DNA of 63,855 nt, counting the filler, from Cercozoa sp. M6MM (Eukaryota > Protista > Endomyxa: Ascetosporea), in the NCBI GenBank assembly GCA_040357565.1. It is 11 parts of 11 records of this genome, joined end to end, with 100 filler letters (N's around TTAATTAATTAA, not from the genome) between each part and the next. Parts side by side here need not be neighbours in the genome. Positions count along the whole stretch, not along the records: positions 44,701 to 53,943 come from JBDODJ010000492.1; 10 more parts are not named here. One strand, given 5' to 3'. How positions within the stretch are numbered: position 1 is the first letter of the stretch; every line of letters begins with the position of its first letter. The position numbers and the translations under genes were made by a program. Positions 44,701-54,179 of the stretch are shown here, piece after piece. The notes under the pieces were generated by a model. The model had not been told where the DNA came from. It was given only the letters and a program-made list of their open reading frames with translations, and searched no databases.

Positions 44701-45109
44701 GGAGACGCCGGAGTGCGTGCTGAACAGACTGCACGGCGAGGTTTTTAACGAGATCCGCAGTTCCCTGCGGCTCGGTGAGGCCTGGCTTCAGCAGCACCGC
44801 GACGCTTTTGTGCTCTCGGACGAGTTCCTGCCTGCCAGTGTCTGCGAAGACGTCAGACACCTTATCTGGACCTTTGCTGGCGATGATCTCTTTGCCGTGG
44901 AGCACCTCTATCTCATGGTAAAACACTACTCTATGACCTTACCTCAGTTGATTTCGTCGACAGTACGGTGCTATTGCTTTGCTTGCATGGAACAGCGTCC
45001 CCTGCATCAGAAGCGCAACGTCGCATGGCAGACAGTGTGTCACATGGCGCCCCAGGAACTCGCACTCGTTCGGAGTGCACGCATTGGCTTTGCGAACTGG
45101 GAGTCTTAG
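44701..45109 (+). CDS. 3' fragment of a hypothetical protein
   Basis: Open protein-like frame from the contig start (LNRLHGEVFNEIRSSLRLGEAWL...) with one probable intron. Confidence 0.4.
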
Positions 45110-45548
45110 GGAACGGTACAGTATACTCACGCGACGGTACGCTGCGAAATCGAACGACAGGACTCCGCCCGCCACATGTACCAATCTTCCTTCAAGTTAG
45201 TTGAGTCCGATAAGAAATTTAAACCAACGCAGCCATCGCCGCTTAGTTCCCCTGCACCAGACTGGGGTGGGTCACAAGAGCATGGCAAAGCTGTCCTGGG
45301 GATTTTTTAAAGAAAAACCGAGTGGGGCAGGATCCCAGGTCATGACTCGACCCCTGTTTCACGGGGCTGAGCTTGATCCGACAATTGAATCAGTTGCACG
45401 CAACGTGCGTGTTCGCGTAACCAACATAAGAAACAAAAAAGTGAGGAAAAACGCGCGCGTCCCGTTCAGCGAGCGGCGAAGTGTGAAGGGACGCAAACTG
45501 AAGCTGAATAGATCGGTCGGTCAAGTCGCTCGGTGTGGCAGAAAGCGC

Positions 45549-48369
45549 CTACTCAGGCTGCGATTTCTCCTCGTCGACGAGCTTCTTGGCGACGCCGGCG
45601 CCCATGATGCTGTCGACACATGTGTTGTCGGCGGCCGCGGCGCCGAAGACCTTGTCCAGCAGCTCGGCGGCCAGCATCTCGGCGGCATCGGCCTCGCTGA
45701 CGGCGACGCCCGTCTCAACGAGCTGTGCAAAAAATAAAGATATACATACACATATACATACGTGTATATATGCATAAAGACATTTAGATATATCCACCTC
45801 GGTGAAGAGCTCGGCCAGCTCGGCGTCCTCGAGCACGGCCTCCTTGACGGCAGCGACAGAAAGCTCGCGCTTGTACTCGTTGAAGAGGTCCTTGTCGGAC
45901 ATGATGGCCACCTGCACGGCGTCGTCGACCTGCTCGGCCGGCAGCAGGCCCTTCTCGACGGCGTCGTCGAAGAGGTGCTCCACGACCTCGTGCAGCGTCG
46001 GCACCATGTGCGGCGTGGCCACGATGTCGCTCTTGGAGGCCTTCTCGAAGAGCGAGAAGCCTTCCTTCTCGTGCAGCATGCGCTCGCAGTCGAGCAGCGC
46101 CTGTTGCGTCTCGAAGAAGAGGTTCGTGCCGGTCGGGTGCTTGAACTTCGTGAGCTTGAGCTGCTCCTCCACCTTGCCAAGCGCCTTGCGGACCGCCTGC
46201 TGGATCTTGAGCTGCGACCACTCCGCCTCCATGCCCGGCTCCGGGAGCTGCTTGCCCGGCGACTCGCTGTATCATGAGCACACACATCCACACACATATA
46301 CCCCGTACTACCCACCTGCATAACAACAGCACTGTCTCCTGGTACCTCTCCACGACGCCCTCGGGATCGTCGCGGCTGAGCCACTGCGCCGACTGGCCTG
46401 TGAGGGCCGGCGCAATGTCGACCTCGTGCACGTCCTCGAGCGACACGTTCTCGAAGTCCTTGACGGCCAGCGTCAGCGGGTCGATCGTCTTGACACCACG
46501 CAGACCCTGGTCGGACAGCTGCTCGAAGGTCTCCTTCACGGCCTGGTAGAACTCCTCGCAGTCCCAGTCGCCGGCACGGGCACGCGCCGTCTGCACACGT
46601 ACACAAGAAACAAGGTTAAGGCAGCACATGTATAGATATGTGTGTATATATTGGAGATAGGCAGGTAGGTCAGGCAGGTACCTCGAGCTTGGCGGCGAAC
46701 TCGGCCGAGCGATCACGAGCGGCGATCATGTCGGGCGCGCCGACCCAGTGGCGACGCGTCTGCTCGAGGATCGAGAGCTGGAAGCCCGGCACGCTCTGCA
46801 GCTTGCGCTCCAGGATGTGCTCATCGTGCAGCTCAAGCGACGAGCCGAAGAAGTAGGTCTCACCGTCGGCAGCCGGAGTGACCTGAGAGCGTCCATGTTA
46901 TAAGGAAGACAGGAGGGGAAAAAGTAGAGGACGCATGCACCTTCATCTCGAGACCACCGCCGAGCATGCTGCTCTTGACAAAGCGCACGAACACGTAGGG
47001 TCGGTGCGGCAGCGCGAGCTTCTTCGTCAGCGCGTTGCGCAGCAGATCCTGCGCCTGCGGCGACAGGTCGTGCGCCGTGCTCACCTACCGAGTACGTACA
47101 GAGTGTAAACACACACACACACACACACACACAGGCAGGGCAGCAACAGAGAAGGGAAGGGCAGACAGGGCGGTGTTGTACCTCAACGTTGGTGCACTCG
47201 AGGTTGAGCGAGTTGAGGTAGCGGAACATGGCGATGAGGTCCCAGAAGTTGTCGAGCAGCTCGTACTTGTTCATCCAGCGCAGCGCCGAGATCGTGCACT
47301 CCGAGATGCCGACGTTCTCGTGACGCAGCACGTCGACGTTGTCGATCGTGATGGCGTCGCTGATGCGCAGCGGCAGCGCCTCCGACGCCGACTTGAGCGG
47401 CGGCTGCAGGTTGATGCGGTTCTGCAGCGTGAGCTCCGTGCCCGAGCCGCGCGCCACGTCCTCCTCGATGGCGTTGATGTCGACGTGCGTGTTGGGAACA
47501 AAGCCCACGAGCTCGTCGTAGCGCTGGAACACCTCCTCAAGCTCGTTGGCCGTGCGCAGCAGCTCGAGCGGGCCGTACGGCGACAGGAACTCCCAGAGCA
47601 TGATCACCTTGCCAAAGCCGTCGGCCAGCAGGTTGTGCCACGACACGTTGCACGCCATCGACGGCGCCTCCGGCACGTCGTTCACCATGCTCACCAAACG
47701 CTCGTCCTGGTCCCACTCGTACTGCGTCTTCCACATCTCCGAGTTCTTGGCGCGCGCCGCCTCCATCTCCGGCGTCACCTCCTTCAGCGCCTGTCAGCAC
47801 ACACATGGATATATATAGCAAAGGGGCAGCATGCGGAGTGAGGCTCGTACCTTGTCGACGAGAATATCGCGCAGGTCGTCGAACACGGTGTCCTCGCGCT
47901 TGCCGAACTTCTCAAAGAGCGGCATGGCTTCGTCCTCGAGGCGGAACTTGGCGGCCTCGAAGGGCGTGCCCTTGTCGTCCGTGACCATCGTGTTCCAGTT
48001 GCGCGGGTTCTGCGCCTCGCCACGCACCTGCTTGTCCTCGTGGAAGACGCTCCACTGCCAGCGCGGCACGAGCGACGTCGTGTCCGACTTGACGTAGCGC
48101 TGCGTGAAGGGCAGCGCGTGCACGCCAGCGGCCGCCAGCAGCGAGGCCGCGCGCTCCTGGTCGTGCTGCGTGTTCAGGTAGAGCACATGGCCCACCTTCC
48201 AGCGCTGCGAGAACTCGTGCTCCATGGCACGCATGCTCTCGAGACCGGGCAGGTGCACCATGAGCTCCTGCTCGTGCACCTGCGTCGTGTTCATCGTGTA
48301 CAGCGACCACGCCGTCGCCATGCCGCGCTTCTGCGCTCCTGCGGCGCGCGCCGTCTTCGCGCTCAGCAT
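45549..48369 (-). CDS. ~796-aa mitochondrial protein containing an ATP synthase OSCP/delta-like domain with long extensions
   Basis: Exons 48369-47851, 47790-47182, 47084-46941, 46882-46682, 46590-46316, 46266-45798 and 45722-45549 total 2391 nt, all GT-AG and in phase. Presequence MLSAKTARAAGAQKRGMA. OSCP-like core ISECTISALRWMNKYELLDNFWDLIAMFRYL...VEVSTAHDLSPQAQDLLRNALTKKL...KSSMLGGGLEMKV. The gene model is strong and the product call moderate. Confidence 0.72.
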
Positions 48370-48861
48370 TTTCTGCACAGACACACCGCATACACTGAGC
48401 AGTGCAAACCAAACTCCAACGACAAACTAAAACAAACAGCAGCAGCTTTTTTGGTGGTGAACAACATATTGGAACAACAAAAGCAAAAGCCACGAAACCA
48501 ATCGCAACAACAAAGCAAAGTGCAAGATGCTGTGCCAGAGTATCTGCAGCACACGCTGGCTGTACACGTGTTTATTGCACGCGGGTTGCCGTGACATGAG
48601 CAGGGCAACCCGCCGAGCACAGCACATCACAAACACCCAAGCGACACGTCTGCGCACCGAGTTAGGCTGCAGGTACCTGGCAGAAAGTCGCACCACAACG
48701 CTGAAAACACCGGGTGGCGAGTCTGCTCGATTACAGTGCTGTCGACTGTCCTTGCAAACGTTTGGTCCAGGGTGGACCAAACTTTTTATTTTACTCTCCG
48801 GCGCTCGTTTTAGCTTCGAGCTGGACGAATAACTTGATTTGACAGGTTTGCAGTGTGTACA

Positions 48862-49746
48862 ATGACGGGCAAGCCAAATTATCGAGCTGTAGCGCAGGAC
48901 GATGATCCTGTTGGCCTCGATGCCAGGCTACCCGAGCCAGCAACGCGATTTTCCACAGGCAGGTTTATCCTCAGTTCTTGTCTTGTACCCAGCCAATTGT
49001 GTGCAGGTGACAAGGTGAAGACGTACCTACACTCAGTGTTTTGGGTGGCACTGGCTGTGCTGCTGCTGTGGCGATCGAAACTCTTCCAAGTCGTCAGCAA
49101 TGGCGACGAACGACTGCGCTGGCCATTTTTGGTGCCGATGTTTTTTCCAGTTCAAGTGAACTTTTGACGCTTTCCGATTGTTCCTGTCCTCAGGTGTGCG
49201 GCATGGCTTCGACGCTGACTGTGATCGGCATCTTTACCTACCTGACTGTACGTGTGCTTTGTGGGAAAGAGCACTGTGATAGGAAGTATGTGTGAGTGTG
49301 CTTTGTGCAGGTGTGGCTCCCAATGGTGAAGAAGCAGTACCGCCGCGATTTCAACGAGTTCAAACCGAAACACATTCAAGTGGCTACAGGTACCACAGAT
49401 CACACTCAGTTTCTGTTGTGACAGGCTTGGGTTGATCATGCGTGTTTGTTGGTGCTGCAGCCCTCATGGTGGCGCAGTTCTTCCTCTACTGCATTGCACT
49501 GTGGCCTGTCTATGGCTTCGCTTCGCCAGTCCTTGTTGGTACCAACACGCACCGTGCTTTTTTGCCTCTGTCATGTATGCGCTGCAGGTGTCACGGGCAT
49601 GGGTGCTCTCTTCTCGGTACAGCCTGCTTCCCTCTGTGTGTACATGGCTGTGTTTTGTTTGTCTGTGTGGATTGTGGATCCCTCGATTGCTGCAGTTAAA
49701 TCTGCTGCCGTCTTGCCCGGGTGGTTCGAAGCAGCAAGCCGAGTGA
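48862..49746 (+). CDS. TMEM128: TMEM128-family four-TM protein
   Basis: HSVFWVALAVLL...IGIFTYLTVWLP...IQVATALMVAQFFLYCIALWPVYGFASPVLVGVTGMG matches the TMEM128 pattern (HSxFW; IALWxVxxFxxP; xxMG). Confidence 0.8.
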
Positions 49747-50264
49747 GTTTACTCAACACTCGACGTGAAGAAACAAACGAAAAAAAACTGATCGAAATCA
49801 ACGCAACTCCGACAACTAAATTCGATTTACGTTACCAGAGGGTTTGTCCCGGATTGACCGGGCGTTTTTTTCTTTGGTCTCATAGAGGGGGGAGTACAGT
49901 CAAGAAAACATAGGAAAGCTCACAACGCCTAACGGTTGGATTTTTCAAAAACGCCCTGCCAATCCAGGGCATACCCTTTGACTTGACGAAGGCAACCTAA
50001 GGACAGCCACCACACCAATGTAGCGCAGTCCATGGGTGGCATGCGGCGCGGTGATCGATGTCAGTCCGGTCAAGTCGACGACCGGCGGAGTGACTTCAGT
50101 CAGTCAACTAGCAAGAAGAGTAACTGAAGACCGGCAGTTTTTGTACTTTCCCAACGGTAAGAAACGCAGTCGCCGAGCACGTGCTCGAACCAGCGAGACG
50201 GTTTAATGGCATACACCTGTTAAGTCTAAACTCTCGTAGCGTAGATTTTGAGAGACACGGCAGA

Positions 50265-52099
50265 ATGCTCAGTGACGCCGAATCGTGCCCCGGCCTCACC
50301 TCGGTCGAAAGCGATCAGGTACAAAAACACACTGCTGGTGTTGTTAATGATGTCTGTGCTTGACGACAGTTTCAGACAGAAGAAGATCTGTACACGAGCA
50401 CATTGACGTCTGGCTCGCCCACACGCAGCACGATCGGCACCGAAGTCACCTCCGACACTGACGACGACCGCAGCGGCAGCAGCGACAGGCACGACGAAGG
50501 CGAAGCCGTCGTCACCGACATTTACGATCGCAATACGCGCGAGATAATGAACGAGTTGGCTCAGTGCGTTTTCCATGATCGTTCGCAGCATGCTGACGTA
50601 TGAATGCTTGTCTGCTTGTGCAGCGATCCTCCGACTAACGAGCAGGTGCAGCAGATGGAAGCCTTGGCCAAGTTTGCCAACTATGCCGAGTACACTGTGG
50701 GCCAGCTGCATGAGACCGACCTGCGTTTTTTACGGGACACTGATCTCGTACTGCAACTCATGAGCACTGGTATCCTGGAATGCACGTCTTTTCTTACATT
50801 TATACGCCTTCCTACTTTTTACATACATACATGCATACATGCATCTACATACTTAACATACGTACACACACATTAATACATACATGCGTGCATCCACATG
50901 TAAGTTTATTTTACATAACCTACATAAATCTATAGGGTGCGGTGCTACCAGTGCAAAACCTCCCCTCACCGAGCAAGAGTTCGACCGACTGCGAACGCGC
51001 TATGTGCTGTTCCTCAAGGTAAAGTTACTAAAGCTTCTTGGCCATGAAAAAAAACAGTACTCGAATCAGGTGAAAGGAGGAGCGCTGGACCGACCGCGAA
51101 CACCGATACCCTCGCGGACAGAAAGGTTTTCTTGAGCATGAGTAGATGCTAGTGTACCAGTATTTTTCGTGCATAGACCGCTGCTGCGCGCGCTGTACGA
51201 GCGACGAGAAGCACTTCGCCGCAACCACATGTTCAGCATTGTCTTTGTTCGCACAATTGTCCGCGTGCGACGAGACAAGACCAAAGAGGTTAGTCAACGT
51301 CTTTTCTCAACCATTCTGCCTCTGTTACTACCCCTCTTTCACCTGGCTGTAGGTGGTCGAACGCGAGGTGAGTGGCTTCATCGACGTTGAGCAACGACTG
51401 CGAGAGAATGAAAAGGACTTCTGGCAGAAGGCTGCAAGGTACTTGGAGAAGACTGCAGTGTTGTACCACCCAGTCTGTGCCTGTAGTTGCTTCGTTCCTC
51501 GCAAGAGCGACCTGTCCTGGTTTGCGTGGCAGTTTTCCTCGGCATCGACAGTGCTCAGCAACGACTCGGACAACTTCGAAGTTGTGACGCTCGAACACCC
51601 TCGTCGCGGCGATGCTGGTACACCACCGTATACCGTTGGCGCGCTTAACTTGTTCACTTTGATGTAGTGCTTCTGCAACCTACTGAATCCCGCCGCACGC
51701 CTGCCCGTGTCGCCAGCAAGCTCGTCAATCAAGTGAACGTCTGCATGTCGCGACGCCGTACCATTGGCGCGGCTGTCAAGAAGATTGCTCAGCCTGGCGG
51801 CACTGGTAGCAACAGCGACAGCAAGGACAAGTCACTCGATTCATTCGCTCAGTGCGTGGCGAGTGAACTTGCGCCGTCCATCGCTTTCAAGAGTCGACGC
51901 GATCGGCGTCTTGTCCATCCTTGTACAATTTGTTTGAATCCTCGAGCTGCACCTTTTGGGGGTTTTTAAACGTATCGACGAGCCTGAGCGTATGCTTCTT
52001 CCAGGTATTCGTACACCGCACACTGCACGCAGTGACATCGACTCACCGCTCTACAAACAAGCCTTCATCCTCGACTTCTTTCCAAACCGGTACCATTAA
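50265..52099 (+). CDS. CFAP299: Cilia- and flagella-associated protein 299 (DUF4464) with acidic N-terminal extension
   Basis: FANYAEY...DLRFLRDTDLVLQLMSTG; LRALYERE...SIVFVR; EVSGFIDVEQRL; PRKSDLSWFAW; SNDSDNFEV; RSDIDSPLYKQAFILD. Confidence 0.85.
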
Positions 52100-52193
52100 A
52101 AGAGTCACGGCACCGCCCCCGCACGAGATCCGAGCACCATGATGTATGGCACACGACACTGCCCGATTAACGCTATTCTGTCCGTCGCCGGTG

Positions 52194-52416
52194 CTACATC
52201 CATTACTTAGTTAGTTGAGTCTTATAGGAAACCAACTAAGTAGTTGTGTCTGCCCGCTGAGGGTAGGGCCATCCTCCCCTTTCGGCTTCATGGTTGGTGC
52301 AGGTGGCGGGCTACAAATAGAGGCGTCATACGCGGCGTCAGGTCGTCCCGTCGTCCTGTCCCTCCACTCGATAAACTAAACAAAACAAAAAAAAAAAAAA
52401 AAAACTACACCCATTA
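52194..52416 (+). mobile_element. Short retroposed insertion (SINE-like or 5'-truncated LINE 3' end) with poly(A) and probable TSD
   Basis: A ~199-bp body ends in an A-rich tail with an 18-A run. It is flanked by CTACATCCATTA (52194-52205) and CTACACCCATTA (52405-52416), 11/12 identical. Confidence 0.6.
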
Positions 52417-52543
52417 ACGTCGGTTCCACCACTAAGCTCCCAGCGAACACTTCGTCGACGTTAAACTCCGCTCGCTCGGGCCGACCCAGTCAAGTACCGT
52501 ACGATCGGATGGGCGCGGATATCTTATATACTATGTACTATGG

Positions 52544-52546
<3 letters not shown>

Positions 52547-52593
<47 letters not shown>
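52547..52593. repeat. (GA)n microsatellite
   Basis: Perfect dinucleotide run. Confidence 0.95.
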
Positions 52594-52594
<1 letters not shown>

Positions 52595-52694
52595 CAGAAG
52601 CCAAACAGCTCAGAGCATACATAGGGTGACCTTTGACAAGATTGCATAGGTGAGGACGAATGTAAGACGGAAGGCAAAACTAAGAACAACAATT

Positions 52695-53090
52695 TCACGT
52701 GCGAACAGCGCTAGCATCCGCACGTTGGCGTAGCGCGATAGCTGCCTGAAGCGTCAGCCTCCGAGCGCAGCCCGATCCGAGGCGCGCGGACTGTTTGACG
52801 GCGTTGCTGAGGCTCCTGTGCCAACGAGGACAGTACCACATTACATTATACAGAGACAGAGACAGAGACAGAGACAGAGACACACACAGACACAGACACA
52901 GATACAGACACACATAGACACATGTATAACACACCGGGTATGGCAGAAACGGCAGTGCGCGACTGCTGCTGCTGCTGTTGTTGTTGTTGTTGTTGTTGAC
53001 TCAGCTCGGTGTCCTCCTTCTGCAGACTGCGCAGCTGCAGACTCGGTCTCGTCGTTGTCGCTGTTGTGCCTACACAACACGTATCAGTCC

Positions 53091-53138
<48 letters not shown>

Positions 53139-53148
53139 NNNNNNNNNN

Positions 53149-53190
<42 letters not shown>

Positions 53191-53921
53191 GCATAAACAG
53201 AGACGTAGACTTCGACATCGACATAGACATAGACATGCAGACATAGACATATACACATAGACATGGCATAGAAGTAAGTACACTCATAGATGGCCGTCGT
53301 GGCCTCTGTCGTCGCTGCCGGTACCGAGGCAGACGGCGCCGCCAGCGAGCGTCGCAGTCGCAGAATCAGATTGCGCGGCGACGGCAACAACGTCGTCGTG
53401 CCACCCTCACCCTCCTCGACTGCAACACTACTGGCCTCCTGCAGCTCCATCTCCTCCATCTGCTCCTGCACACCCACATACACACACTCAGGGGGGGGGG
53501 GGGTCCGGGGCCGCGGGGGGGGGGGTATGCTGCACCTGCCAGTCGGCCTCGCTCTCCTCACTCAGTCGACACAGCAGGTCCAACGCCGCCTGCCAGGAGG
53601 GAGGGAGTAAGGGGGAGGGGACGGGTAGGGTGCTAAACTAGCCTACGTCCGAGTTGGTCGCCAGCTGCACGTCGCGTAACCTCGTCACGTCCATCTAAAA
53701 CCCGAGACAACAAGTAGGGGGGGGGGGGGGGGCAAGGGAGAAAGTCAGGACTTAATACAACCTACGCTCAATGTAACACCTCGCGGACCATCCAGTCCTC
53801 TACACAACCACAGGGGTAGGAGCGGGGAGGGGGGTTAGAAACAGCACAGAAAGCCCCCCACCTGGGACAGTGCACAAACTGCACACGCGACCGCAGCAAC
53901 TCGCGCTCCTTTGCCAGTTCC
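52695..53921 (-). CDS. Hypothetical protein, 3' part
   Basis: Exon-like blocks (ELAKERELLRSRVQF; AALDLLCRLSEESEADWQ; VQEQMEEMELQE...; WHRSLSNAVKQ...*) separated by C-rich and CA-repeat introns. Confidence 0.5.
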
Positions 53922-54179
53922 TACAGGACGGGGGGGGGGGGGGNNNNNNNNNNNNNNNNNNNNNNNNNNNNNNNNNNNNNNNNNNNNTTAATTAATTAAN
54001 NNNNNNNNNNNNNNNNNNNNNNNNNNNNNNNNNNNNNNNNNNNGTCGACCACACGACAGCGCAGCCCGCTTCGGGTGGGACCATCCAACGCAACTCCCCT
54101 TTTGAAGGCATCAAGGTTGGTACGGAAGCAATGTATAAGGCGAGGGCACTATGCGTACGCTGGCTGACGGAACAAAAAG

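Follow-up and report, generated by a model that had tools for sequence, protein, structure and literature searches.

OSCP is the hinge between the F1 head and the stator and, to our knowledge, is small and at most modestly extended in every ATP synthase known. A gene of the marine amoeba Lemnamoeba sinaloensis (Cercozoa sp. M6MM; Rhizaria) raises the question of whether an OSCP can form the centre of a far larger polypeptide. The window analyzed here is a stretch of 63,855 nt, in which the locus is read from one 9.2-kb contig. The original prediction, based on motifs recognized by eye, placed a giant OSCP-like protein at this locus. Our results indicate that the gene encodes 786 aa, probably a genuine protein of OSCP type whose size is extremely enlarged, and we infer that it has a role in the stator.

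Gene structure, leader and codon usage

The coding region lies at 45549..48369 on the minus strand, as predicted, and runs from an ATG at 48369 to a stop codon at 45551-45549. It is defined by exon translations, splice sites, the match to a deposited protein and uniform GC3. Exons 1-4 occupy 48369-47851, 47790-47182, 47084-46941 and 46882-46682, and exons 5-7 occupy 46590-46346, 46266-45798 and 45722-45549. All six introns have GT..AG ends, with lengths of 60, 97, 58, 91, 79 and 75 nt in order. The exons sum to 2361 nt, that is, 786 codons and the stop, which corrects the length of ~796 aa given originally. The prediction of seven clean in-phase exons holds for the exon number and the GT-AG borders but not for the exon 5/6 junction, which splits a codon (phase 2); the remaining junctions are phase 0. 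The exon model is identical to the deposited "hypothetical protein" MES1913947.1 (786 aa; 100% identity in exon 2), whose annotation came from a transcriptome-trained pipeline (PMC13746701). Full-length analyses were carried out on this deposited sequence (P0001), and exon statistics were taken exon by exon.

The first 25 residues (48295..48369, minus strand, within exon 1) form a presequence-like leader, which is rich in Ala, Arg and Lys, contains four basic (K+R) and no acidic (D+E) residues and ends in ...AQKRGMA. Its composition, in agreement with the presequence proposed earlier, suggests a putative mitochondrial targeting peptide. The 786-aa protein contains no hydrophobic segment of transmembrane grade (highest 19-residue Kyte-Doolittle mean, 1.05), as had also been anticipated. 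GC3 is 0.93 over the whole gene and 0.87-0.97 in each exon, compared with 0.49-0.72 in the neighbouring coding exons. The extreme codon bias noted from the start is thus real and, if codon bias is taken as a guide to expression, is consistent with a core gene expressed at a high level.

The central region resembles OSCP/F1-delta

The OSCP/F1-delta-like domain spans residues 242-456 (46787..47586, minus strand, containing introns 2 and 3), as delimited by hhalign and supported by shuffled controls and the ESM Atlas. When the full-length protein was compared with 24,736 Pfam models, OSCP (PF00213) ranked first with an E value of 0.048 and 14.2 bits, a score that falls short of the family's gathering cut-off of 22.3 bits; the OSCP reading was therefore borne out in rank but not in score. 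The matching residues 335-400 align with positions 64-130 of the 172 in the profile and, together with the delta HMM described below, define a sequence-signal core at 47013..47307 (minus strand, containing intron 2). The delta HMM was built from 17 bacterial delta subunits of 174-189 aa, namely E. coli atpH and 16 delta genes obtained by tblastn from PLSDB records; the close AtpH relatives left out of the profile were enterobacterial only, with at least 79% identity to E. coli AtpH (nearly all at least 89%). Against the whole protein it scored 14.2 bits (P 1.8e-6), aligning the same residues 335-400 with positions 70-135 of 178, and it scored 15.5 bits on the slice 225-470. None of 10,000 shuffled sequences reached 14.2 bits, the highest being 10.1.

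Further hhalign comparison with the delta profile gave a probability of 78%, P 1.8e-5 and a score of 38.3 over 173 columns. The alignment is colinear, pairing residues 242-456 with delta template columns 8-180 of 181, and takes in both the start of the N-terminal helix ("xxPYxxxL") and the "V-x-S-x-L-GG" end. None of 300 shuffles reached 38.3 (highest 26.4), and the reversed sequence scored 13.7 and the protein's own extensions 12-15. Within the domain, the N-terminal part (~242-366) is predicted to be helical and the C-terminal part (~372-456), which includes "VKSSMLGGG", to be alpha/beta. The conserved C-terminal strand motif of OSCP/delta, D/x-P/S-S-h-h-GG, is present as "VKSSMLGG", which both the delta HMM and hhalign align with "VDPSLLGG" at HMM positions 144-151, a match that is not significant alone. 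The motifs picked out by eye, ISECTISALRWMNKYELLDNFWDLIAMFRYL, VEVSTAHDLSPQAQDLLRNALTKKL and KSSMLGGG, are indeed the stretches that Pfam, the delta HMM and hhalign align to OSCP/delta. Relative to delta, the domain carries ~42 extra residues, most of them near 270-320. Posterior confidence in the hhalign alignment is low across the N-terminal half of the domain, and the delta HMM alone gives no signal for the N-terminal helical bundle.

Several searches found no such similarity. The NCBIfam delta models did not match the 786-aa protein, phmmer returned no OSCP/delta at E <= 10 from the complete set of PDB chains, among which OSCP/delta structures are numerous, and BLASTP against E. coli delta gave no match. 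Pfam and PDB sequence searches made exon by exon also missed OSCP, because the signal straddles the exon 2/3 border. The three sequence-profile tests draw on one underlying signal. Nevertheless, the HMM, hhalign, shuffled, reversed and internal controls indicate that similarity to the OSCP/delta profile across both domains exceeds chance, and they support an OSCP relationship that is sub-threshold but of calibrated significance.

Language-model neighbours agree with the profile searches on the middle of the protein, for which OSCP identity had been proposed over residues ~225-430. In the ESM Atlas, the top feature neighbours of residues 225-470 were PF00213 clusters (score 0.80) and the sole structure neighbour was an F1 delta cluster (TM 0.48, residues 225-448), both scores lying within the range occasionally reached by shuffled sequences; exon 2 alone gave no usable match. 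AlphaFold2 in single-sequence mode gave a pLDDT of 37 for the full protein and 39 for residues 215-376, too low in both cases for a usable model, and a Foldseek search of the full-length model against PDB returned noise. The order H-E-H-E-E-E-H over 348-451 in this pLDDT-37 model and ~6-7 predicted helices over 224-367 are compatible with the two-domain fold of OSCP.

The flanking extensions and the search for relatives

The N-terminal extension comprises ~215 residues after the leader (residues 26-241; 47587..48294, minus strand, containing intron 1 at 47850-47791), and the C-terminal extension ~330 residues (457-786; 45552..46786, minus strand, containing introns 4-6). The hhalign boundaries thus revise the flank sizes from the ~220 and ~370 aa first estimated to ~241 (leader included) and 330 aa. 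The C-terminal extension is acidic, with a net charge of -33, and mainly helical in the low-confidence pLDDT-37 model. The same model places a beta-alpha-beta-beta unit at ~61-110 of the N-terminal extension, followed by helices at 145-245, likewise with low confidence. Neither extension has a family assignment: the N-terminal one found no match, and the C-terminal one no significant match, in Pfam, NCBIfam or PDB sequences. An AadA-type nucleotidyltransferase signal at residues 649-697 (NCBIfam E 0.011; 15 bits against a cut-off of 375 bits) was treated as noise. A weak match to PDB 7uy4 and a sub-threshold Pfam GAAD match agree with this signal and were also taken as noise.

The extensions had been suggested to be fused stator elements. 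A bacterial subunit-b profile, built like the delta profile, gave -0.1 bits against the protein with hmmsearch and 11.6-13.2 with hhalign, below shuffles. By hhalign, the N-terminal extension scored 12.4 with the delta profile and 12.1 with the subunit-b profile, both under the shuffle range, and the C-terminal extension scored 11.6 with the subunit-b profile, also under shuffles. Because the subunit-b profile matches neither extension, fusion of a bacterial-type subunit b was rejected. Nor did the extensions match any Pfam family, whose models include mitochondrial b, d and F6 and served as the comparison for mitochondrial b-h, d and h, or any PDB ATP synthase chain, so the suggestion found no backing.

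A search for equally long orthologues in relatives had been suggested; neither ~15 billion proteins nor the JGI metagenomes yielded a homologue, whatever its length. HMMER, run exhaustively on 1.84 billion representatives with exon 2 as the query, recovered no true relative beyond the protein itself; scattered short matches to two TPR-like repeat proteins (P0002 and P0003) were judged spurious. In word-seeded searches, the self-match was the only result whether the query was the whole protein or region 330-470. Conservation is consequently without support, since no orthologue was found.

A proposed OSCP-type stator subunit and its alternatives

We propose that the gene specifies a nuclear-encoded, matrix-targeted protein with a highly divergent OSCP/F1-delta centre of ~215 residues and two lineage-specific extensions. 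Its most likely identity, which we give about an even chance, is the OSCP-type stator subunit of Lemnamoeba. The protein would be imported into mitochondria and incorporated into ATP synthase. There, the OSCP domain would grip the N-terminal tails of F1 alpha atop the F1 head with its predicted helical N-terminal half and connect to the peripheral stalk through its predicted alpha/beta C-terminal half. An additional "hat" over the F1 crown may be formed by the ~215-residue N-terminal extension, and the ~330-residue acidic helical C-terminal extension may descend along the stalk or thicken it, possibly replacing stator subunits unidentifiable in the related Retaria. Lemnamoeba sinaloensis is aerobic and has tubular cristae and a retarian-like mitogenome without atp8 (PMC13746701). 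Stator remodelling is plausible in this clade, because subunits b-h, f, 8, i/j and k cannot be identified in retarians (PMC10214729). A stronger version, which we rate somewhat short of even and hold tentatively, is that the protein is the sole OSCP of Lemnamoeba and that its extensions form, within one polypeptide, a matrix-side architecture not seen before: a "hat" or crown above F1 together with a reinforced or substitute peripheral stalk in place of the subunits unidentifiable in Retaria/Apofilosa.

Against a sole OSCP stands the possibility, in our view rather unlikely and resting on expectation, that a normal-size OSCP serves the ATP synthase and that the 786-aa protein is a divergent paralogue, whose OSCP-derived domain is reused for another purpose in the mitochondrion, for example in a partner of F1 with an accessory, regulatory or assembly function, or in an unrelated scaffold. 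The OSCPs of ciliates, euglenozoans and apicomplexans, whose ATP synthases are very divergent, are still caught by standard profiles. It would thus be unusual for a sole OSCP to escape profile recognition, a point in favour of a paralogue; the domain, under the Pfam cut-off and without a PDB OSCP match, looks too divergent for an essential single-copy stator subunit. The protein is moreover a singleton without an orthologue, as a young, fast-evolving duplicate would be, and the subunits that a survey of 219 proteomes (PMC10214729) lists as missing from rhizarians or retarians do not include OSCP. On the other hand, the strong codon bias in all exons and the presequence-like leader suit an abundant core mitochondrial protein. 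We also know of no occurrence of the OSCP fold beyond the F-ATPase delta/OSCP subunit and b-delta fusions, which speaks for a stator subunit.

The two remaining explanations deny the architecture itself. The protein could be an orphan, probably mitochondrial, with no relation to OSCP, whose resemblance reflects a chance or convergent pattern of amphipathic helices and a beta-hairpin. Each single line of evidence is indeed sub-threshold (Pfam E value, ESM feature score, TM score and hhalign probability), the three profile tests have one signal in common, and the AlphaFold2 and Foldseek results give no structural confirmation. We nevertheless consider this explanation improbable: OSCP/delta comes first among ~25,000 Pfam models, with the delta profile and in two neighbour searches that draw on language models or structure, the match runs colinearly along the entire delta length, and the real scores are never reached in either set of shuffles, with reversed and internal controls flat. 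Alternatively, the gene model could wrongly unite two or three adjacent genes, a normal OSCP and genes for the N-terminal and C-terminal parts, and splice junctions 1/2 and 4/5/6/7 are in fact predicted. However, the boundary between the N-terminal extension and the OSCP domain falls within exon 2 and that between the OSCP domain and the C-terminal extension within exon 4, each one uninterrupted ORF; since both fusion points lie inside single exons, the architecture is not a product of joined gene models. The inter-exon gaps measure just 58-97 nt and carry GT-AG ends. Of the six introns, intron 1 would introduce an in-frame stop on retention and four others would shift the frame by their length, which leaves intron 6 as the only one that would read through. 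High GC3 sets all seven exons apart from their neighbours, and the deposited model stems from a transcriptome-trained pipeline (PMC13746701). Such an artefact is accordingly highly improbable.

If the 786-aa protein is an OSCP-type stator subunit, this aerobic rhizarian would have an OSCP enlarged ~four-fold, larger than any other known to us; if it is also the sole OSCP and its extensions build the proposed crown and stalk, the mitochondrial ATP synthase of Rhizaria would include a structural type that is new. We found no reported ATP synthase structure from Rhizaria, and a 2023 survey of ATP synthase subunits calls for rhizarian structures (PMC10214729). The protein would offer a handle on the missing retarian stator, as a target for a pull-down tag or antibody and as a marker in complexome profiling, and it opens the hypothesis that OSCP extensions carry the missing stalk mass. 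If a normal OSCP exists, the protein would instead represent a rare recruitment of an OSCP-fold domain into another large mitochondrial protein.

Comparison with known systems

The Lemnamoeba protein resembles mitochondrial OSCP and F1 delta (PF00213) in the colinear match over residues 242-456, the predicted succession of helical and alpha/beta halves and the "V-x-S-x-L-GG" motif, and it shares with mitochondrial OSCP a mitochondrial-type leader and the absence of a transmembrane helix. In contrast, it has 786 aa rather than ~180-230, a Pfam score below gathering, extra residues in the N-domain and ~215-aa and 330-aa extensions without known homology, and its association with F1 is proposed by inference. 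In the mycobacterial b-delta protein (AtpH), a b-type N-terminal transmembrane helix and coiled coil are fused to delta. In both proteins a delta/OSCP domain is embedded in a far longer chain that has an addition at its N-terminus, whereas the Lemnamoeba protein lacks a transmembrane segment and similarity to the b profile and carries a large C-terminal addition as well.

Closer in phylogeny, peripheral stalks modified by fusion and accretion have a precedent within the same supergroup, namely the b-h fusion found across SAR and the divergent stators known from ciliates, myzozoans and euglenozoans (PMC10214729, PMC7785744, PMC6930080). Those changes, unlike the one proposed here, affect subunits other than OSCP. 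The OSCPs in known ciliate, myzozoan and euglenozoan structures have modest extensions and are recognizable by standard profiles. In Acanthamoeba castellanii, OSCP is elongated by a C-terminal extension and lies beneath an MDH/MASA "hat" (PMC13632647; PDB 9ZFT, 9ZFW). The Acanthamoeba hat consists of separate proteins and its OSCP is extended only at the C-terminus, whereas the Lemnamoeba chain is extended at both ends and has no recognizable enzyme domain and no sequence similarity to any PDB chain. Acanthamoeba is nonetheless a protist with an enlarged OSCP, and it sets a precedent for extra mass above OSCP (PMC13632647).

Gene structure and genomic context

The contig carrying the OSCP-like gene is one 9.2-kb piece (window 44701-53943), on which seven clean open segments run along the minus strand from an ATG at 48369 to a stop codon at 45551-45549 (exons 1-7: 48369-47851, 47790-47182, 47084-46941, 46882-46682, 46590-46346, 46266-45798 and 45722-45549). 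These exons total 2361 nt, equivalent to 786 codons plus stop, and are separated by six predicted introns of 58-97 nt, all bounded by GT..AG; the codon at the exon 5/6 junction is split and the remaining junctions are in phase 0. Exhaustive HMMER searching with exon 2 matched a 786-aa protein at 100% identity over its residues 174-376, the sequence of which equals the translations of exons 1-7 placed in series. This protein, NCBI MES1913947.1 ('MAG: hypothetical protein MHM6MM_006090 [Cercozoa sp. M6MM]'), forms a singleton cluster found on one 9243-bp contig, and all full-length analyses were made on it. M6MM, a marine and amphizoic amoeba belonging to Apofilosa (Rhizaria) and since described as Lemnamoeba sinaloensis, has tubular mitochondrial cristae and a reduced, retarian-like mitogenome without atp8, and its gene models were trained with transcriptome data (PMC11069148, PMC13746701).

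Intron 6 (window 45723-45797; 75 nt, a multiple of three, 27% GC, no in-frame stop) alone reads through if retained, adding 25 residues with the frame kept, and the ORF 45549..46232 runs through it. Its retention could yield an alternative isoform or explain why gene models differ in length.

A neighbouring plus-strand multi-exon gene (window 48862-~49750), arranged head-to-head with the OSCP-like gene and separated from it by ~490 bp of intergenic sequence, has an exon at 49003-49167 that matches Pfam TMEM128 (E 2.5e-4; 22.0 bits, just under the 23.9-bit cut-off). Another plus-strand multi-exon gene (window ~50400-52140) matches DUF4464 (51353-51667, E 1.7e-8; 50604-50770, E 5e-3) and has ordinary codon bias (GC3 0.66-0.69). 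Simple-sequence repeats (SSRs), dinucleotide and related ((AC)n, (GA)n and (GACA)-like), occur at 47109-47133, within intron 2 of the OSCP-like gene, and at 52546-52593, 52850-52920 and 53095-53187, the last being interrupted within its (AC)n run by an assembly gap (N at 53140-53149). They match the reported L. sinaloensis genome, in which AC:GT repeats are unusually abundant (PMC11069148, PMC13746701) and SSRs fragmented the short-read assembly (PMC13746701). Poly-G tracts of at least 10 bases are found at 53490-53530, 53720-53745 and 53930-53943, in a GC-rich low-complexity region near the contig end. The contig terminates in such a tract, which suggests that homopolymers, besides SSRs, limited assembly.

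The OSCP-like middle domain

Single-exon queries of the gene gave no match in Pfam or PDB. With the full-length protein, OSCP (PF00213) ranked first among all Pfam families, residues 334-400 aligning with profile positions 64-130 (E 0.048; 14.2 bits, under the 22.3-bit cut-off); this match straddles the exon 2/3 border and was therefore absent from the exon-wise searches. An independent delta profile was built from E. coli atpH and 16 delta genes from plasmid-collection records, covering gamma-, beta- and alphaproteobacteria, Bacillota and one actinomycete. In hmmsearch with filters off, it matched residues 335-400 at model positions 70-135 with 14.2 bits (P 1.8e-6 for a single comparison), a score that 10,000 shuffles, whether global or windowed, never attained (maximum 10.1). 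Moreover, hhalign of residues 225-470 against the delta alignment gave 78% probability (P 1.8e-5; 173 columns), pairing residues 242-456 with template positions 8-180 of 181, from the '..PY......A' helix to 'V.S.LGG ... G....GS ... L'. Its score of 38.3 compares with at most 26.4 in 300 shuffles, 13.7 for the reversed sequence, and 12.4 and 15.3 for the protein's own N- and C-extensions. A subunit-b profile built likewise as a negative-control family gave no signal across the whole protein. The N-terminal helical half of the domain aligned with low confidence in hhalign and was not detected by the delta HMM alone; the NCBIfam delta models returned nothing, and phmmer against PDB returned no OSCP/delta match.

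In the ESM Atlas, PF00213 clusters took ranks 1 and 3 among the feature neighbours of residues 225-470 (score 0.80, weak alone), and the lone structure neighbour of the Atlas model was an F1 delta cluster (TM 0.48 for 168 residues over 225-448, also weak alone). Obtained without profile alignment, these neighbours agree with the OSCP/delta profile matches. Two AlphaFold2 single-sequence models reached pLDDT 37 and 39, too low for use, and Foldseek on the AlphaFold2 model returned noise only; the predicted order of secondary structures, from a low-confidence model, is compatible with OSCP and is no evidence by itself. Residues ~242-456 are very probably a true OSCP/delta homologue, and that the protein bears no relation to OSCP is improbable.

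No relative of the protein was found by exhaustive HMMER with exon 2, by word-seeded searches (~5.8 billion clusters) with the whole protein or with the 330-470 region in a long-protein length window, or in a JGI metagenome scan. So far, the L. sinaloensis genome is the only one with this giant architecture, and the absence of relatives leaves no alignment to improve structure prediction.

Leader and extensions

Residues 1-25, which include four basic residues and no acidic one, look like a mitochondrial presequence. For the two extensions (residues 26-241 and 457-786), searches of Pfam, NCBIfam and PDB found no matching family or chain. With a net charge of -33, the C-extension is strongly acidic, and it is predicted to be helical; the protein has no TM-grade segment anywhere. 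The original prediction took these extensions as possible fused stator elements. The b profile finds no resemblance to bacterial subunit b in either, and likeness to mitochondrial b-h, d and h was tested through Pfam only. In view of these null results in families, PDB and the b profile, the fused-stator idea has no positive support.

Residues 649-697 (window ~45895-46041, minus strand) weakly resemble the motif region at the N-terminus of nucleotidyltransferases of the ANT(3'')/AadA kind (NCBIfam E 0.011; PDB 7uy4 E 0.59) and overlap a sub-threshold Pfam GAAD match. With scores far under the cut-offs, this likeness was taken as noise, probably arising by chance.

Identity of the protein

Most probably, MES1913947.1 is targeted to the matrix, is abundant and has an OSCP core of divergent sequence. 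That seven exons of separate genes were artefactually joined is hardly credible: GC3 is 0.87-0.97 in all seven exons versus 0.49-0.72 in coding exons next door, and retention of five of the six introns breaks the frame (four through length, intron 1 through an in-frame stop). In addition, the N-extension/OSCP-like and OSCP-like/C-extension boundaries fall within exon 2 and exon 4, respectively, and therefore both fusions lie in uninterrupted ORFs. The most economical reading, to which we give roughly even credence, is that the protein is the bona fide ATP synthase OSCP subunit of L. sinaloensis; its main rival, a divergent paralogue alongside a normal OSCP, is rather doubtful. The OSCP-subunit reading fits the reported absence of identifiable b-h, f, 8, i/j and k subunits from the related retarians (PMC10214729), and the precedent of Acanthamoeba, in which OSCP is elongated and additional mass lies on top of it (PMC13632647). 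As an OSCP subunit, the protein would place its N-extension over the F1 crown and its C-extension along the peripheral stalk.

On the basis of sub-threshold homology and a single orphan gene, the protein may point to an unexplored ATP synthase. Our literature search found no description of an OSCP-type protein that reaches 786 aa and bears large additions at each end. The OSCP/delta family itself is known, and a fused version of it exists in the mycobacterial b-delta fusion. The OSCP of Acanthamoeba is enlarged by a C-terminal extension, whereas the L. sinaloensis protein carries large additions at both ends.
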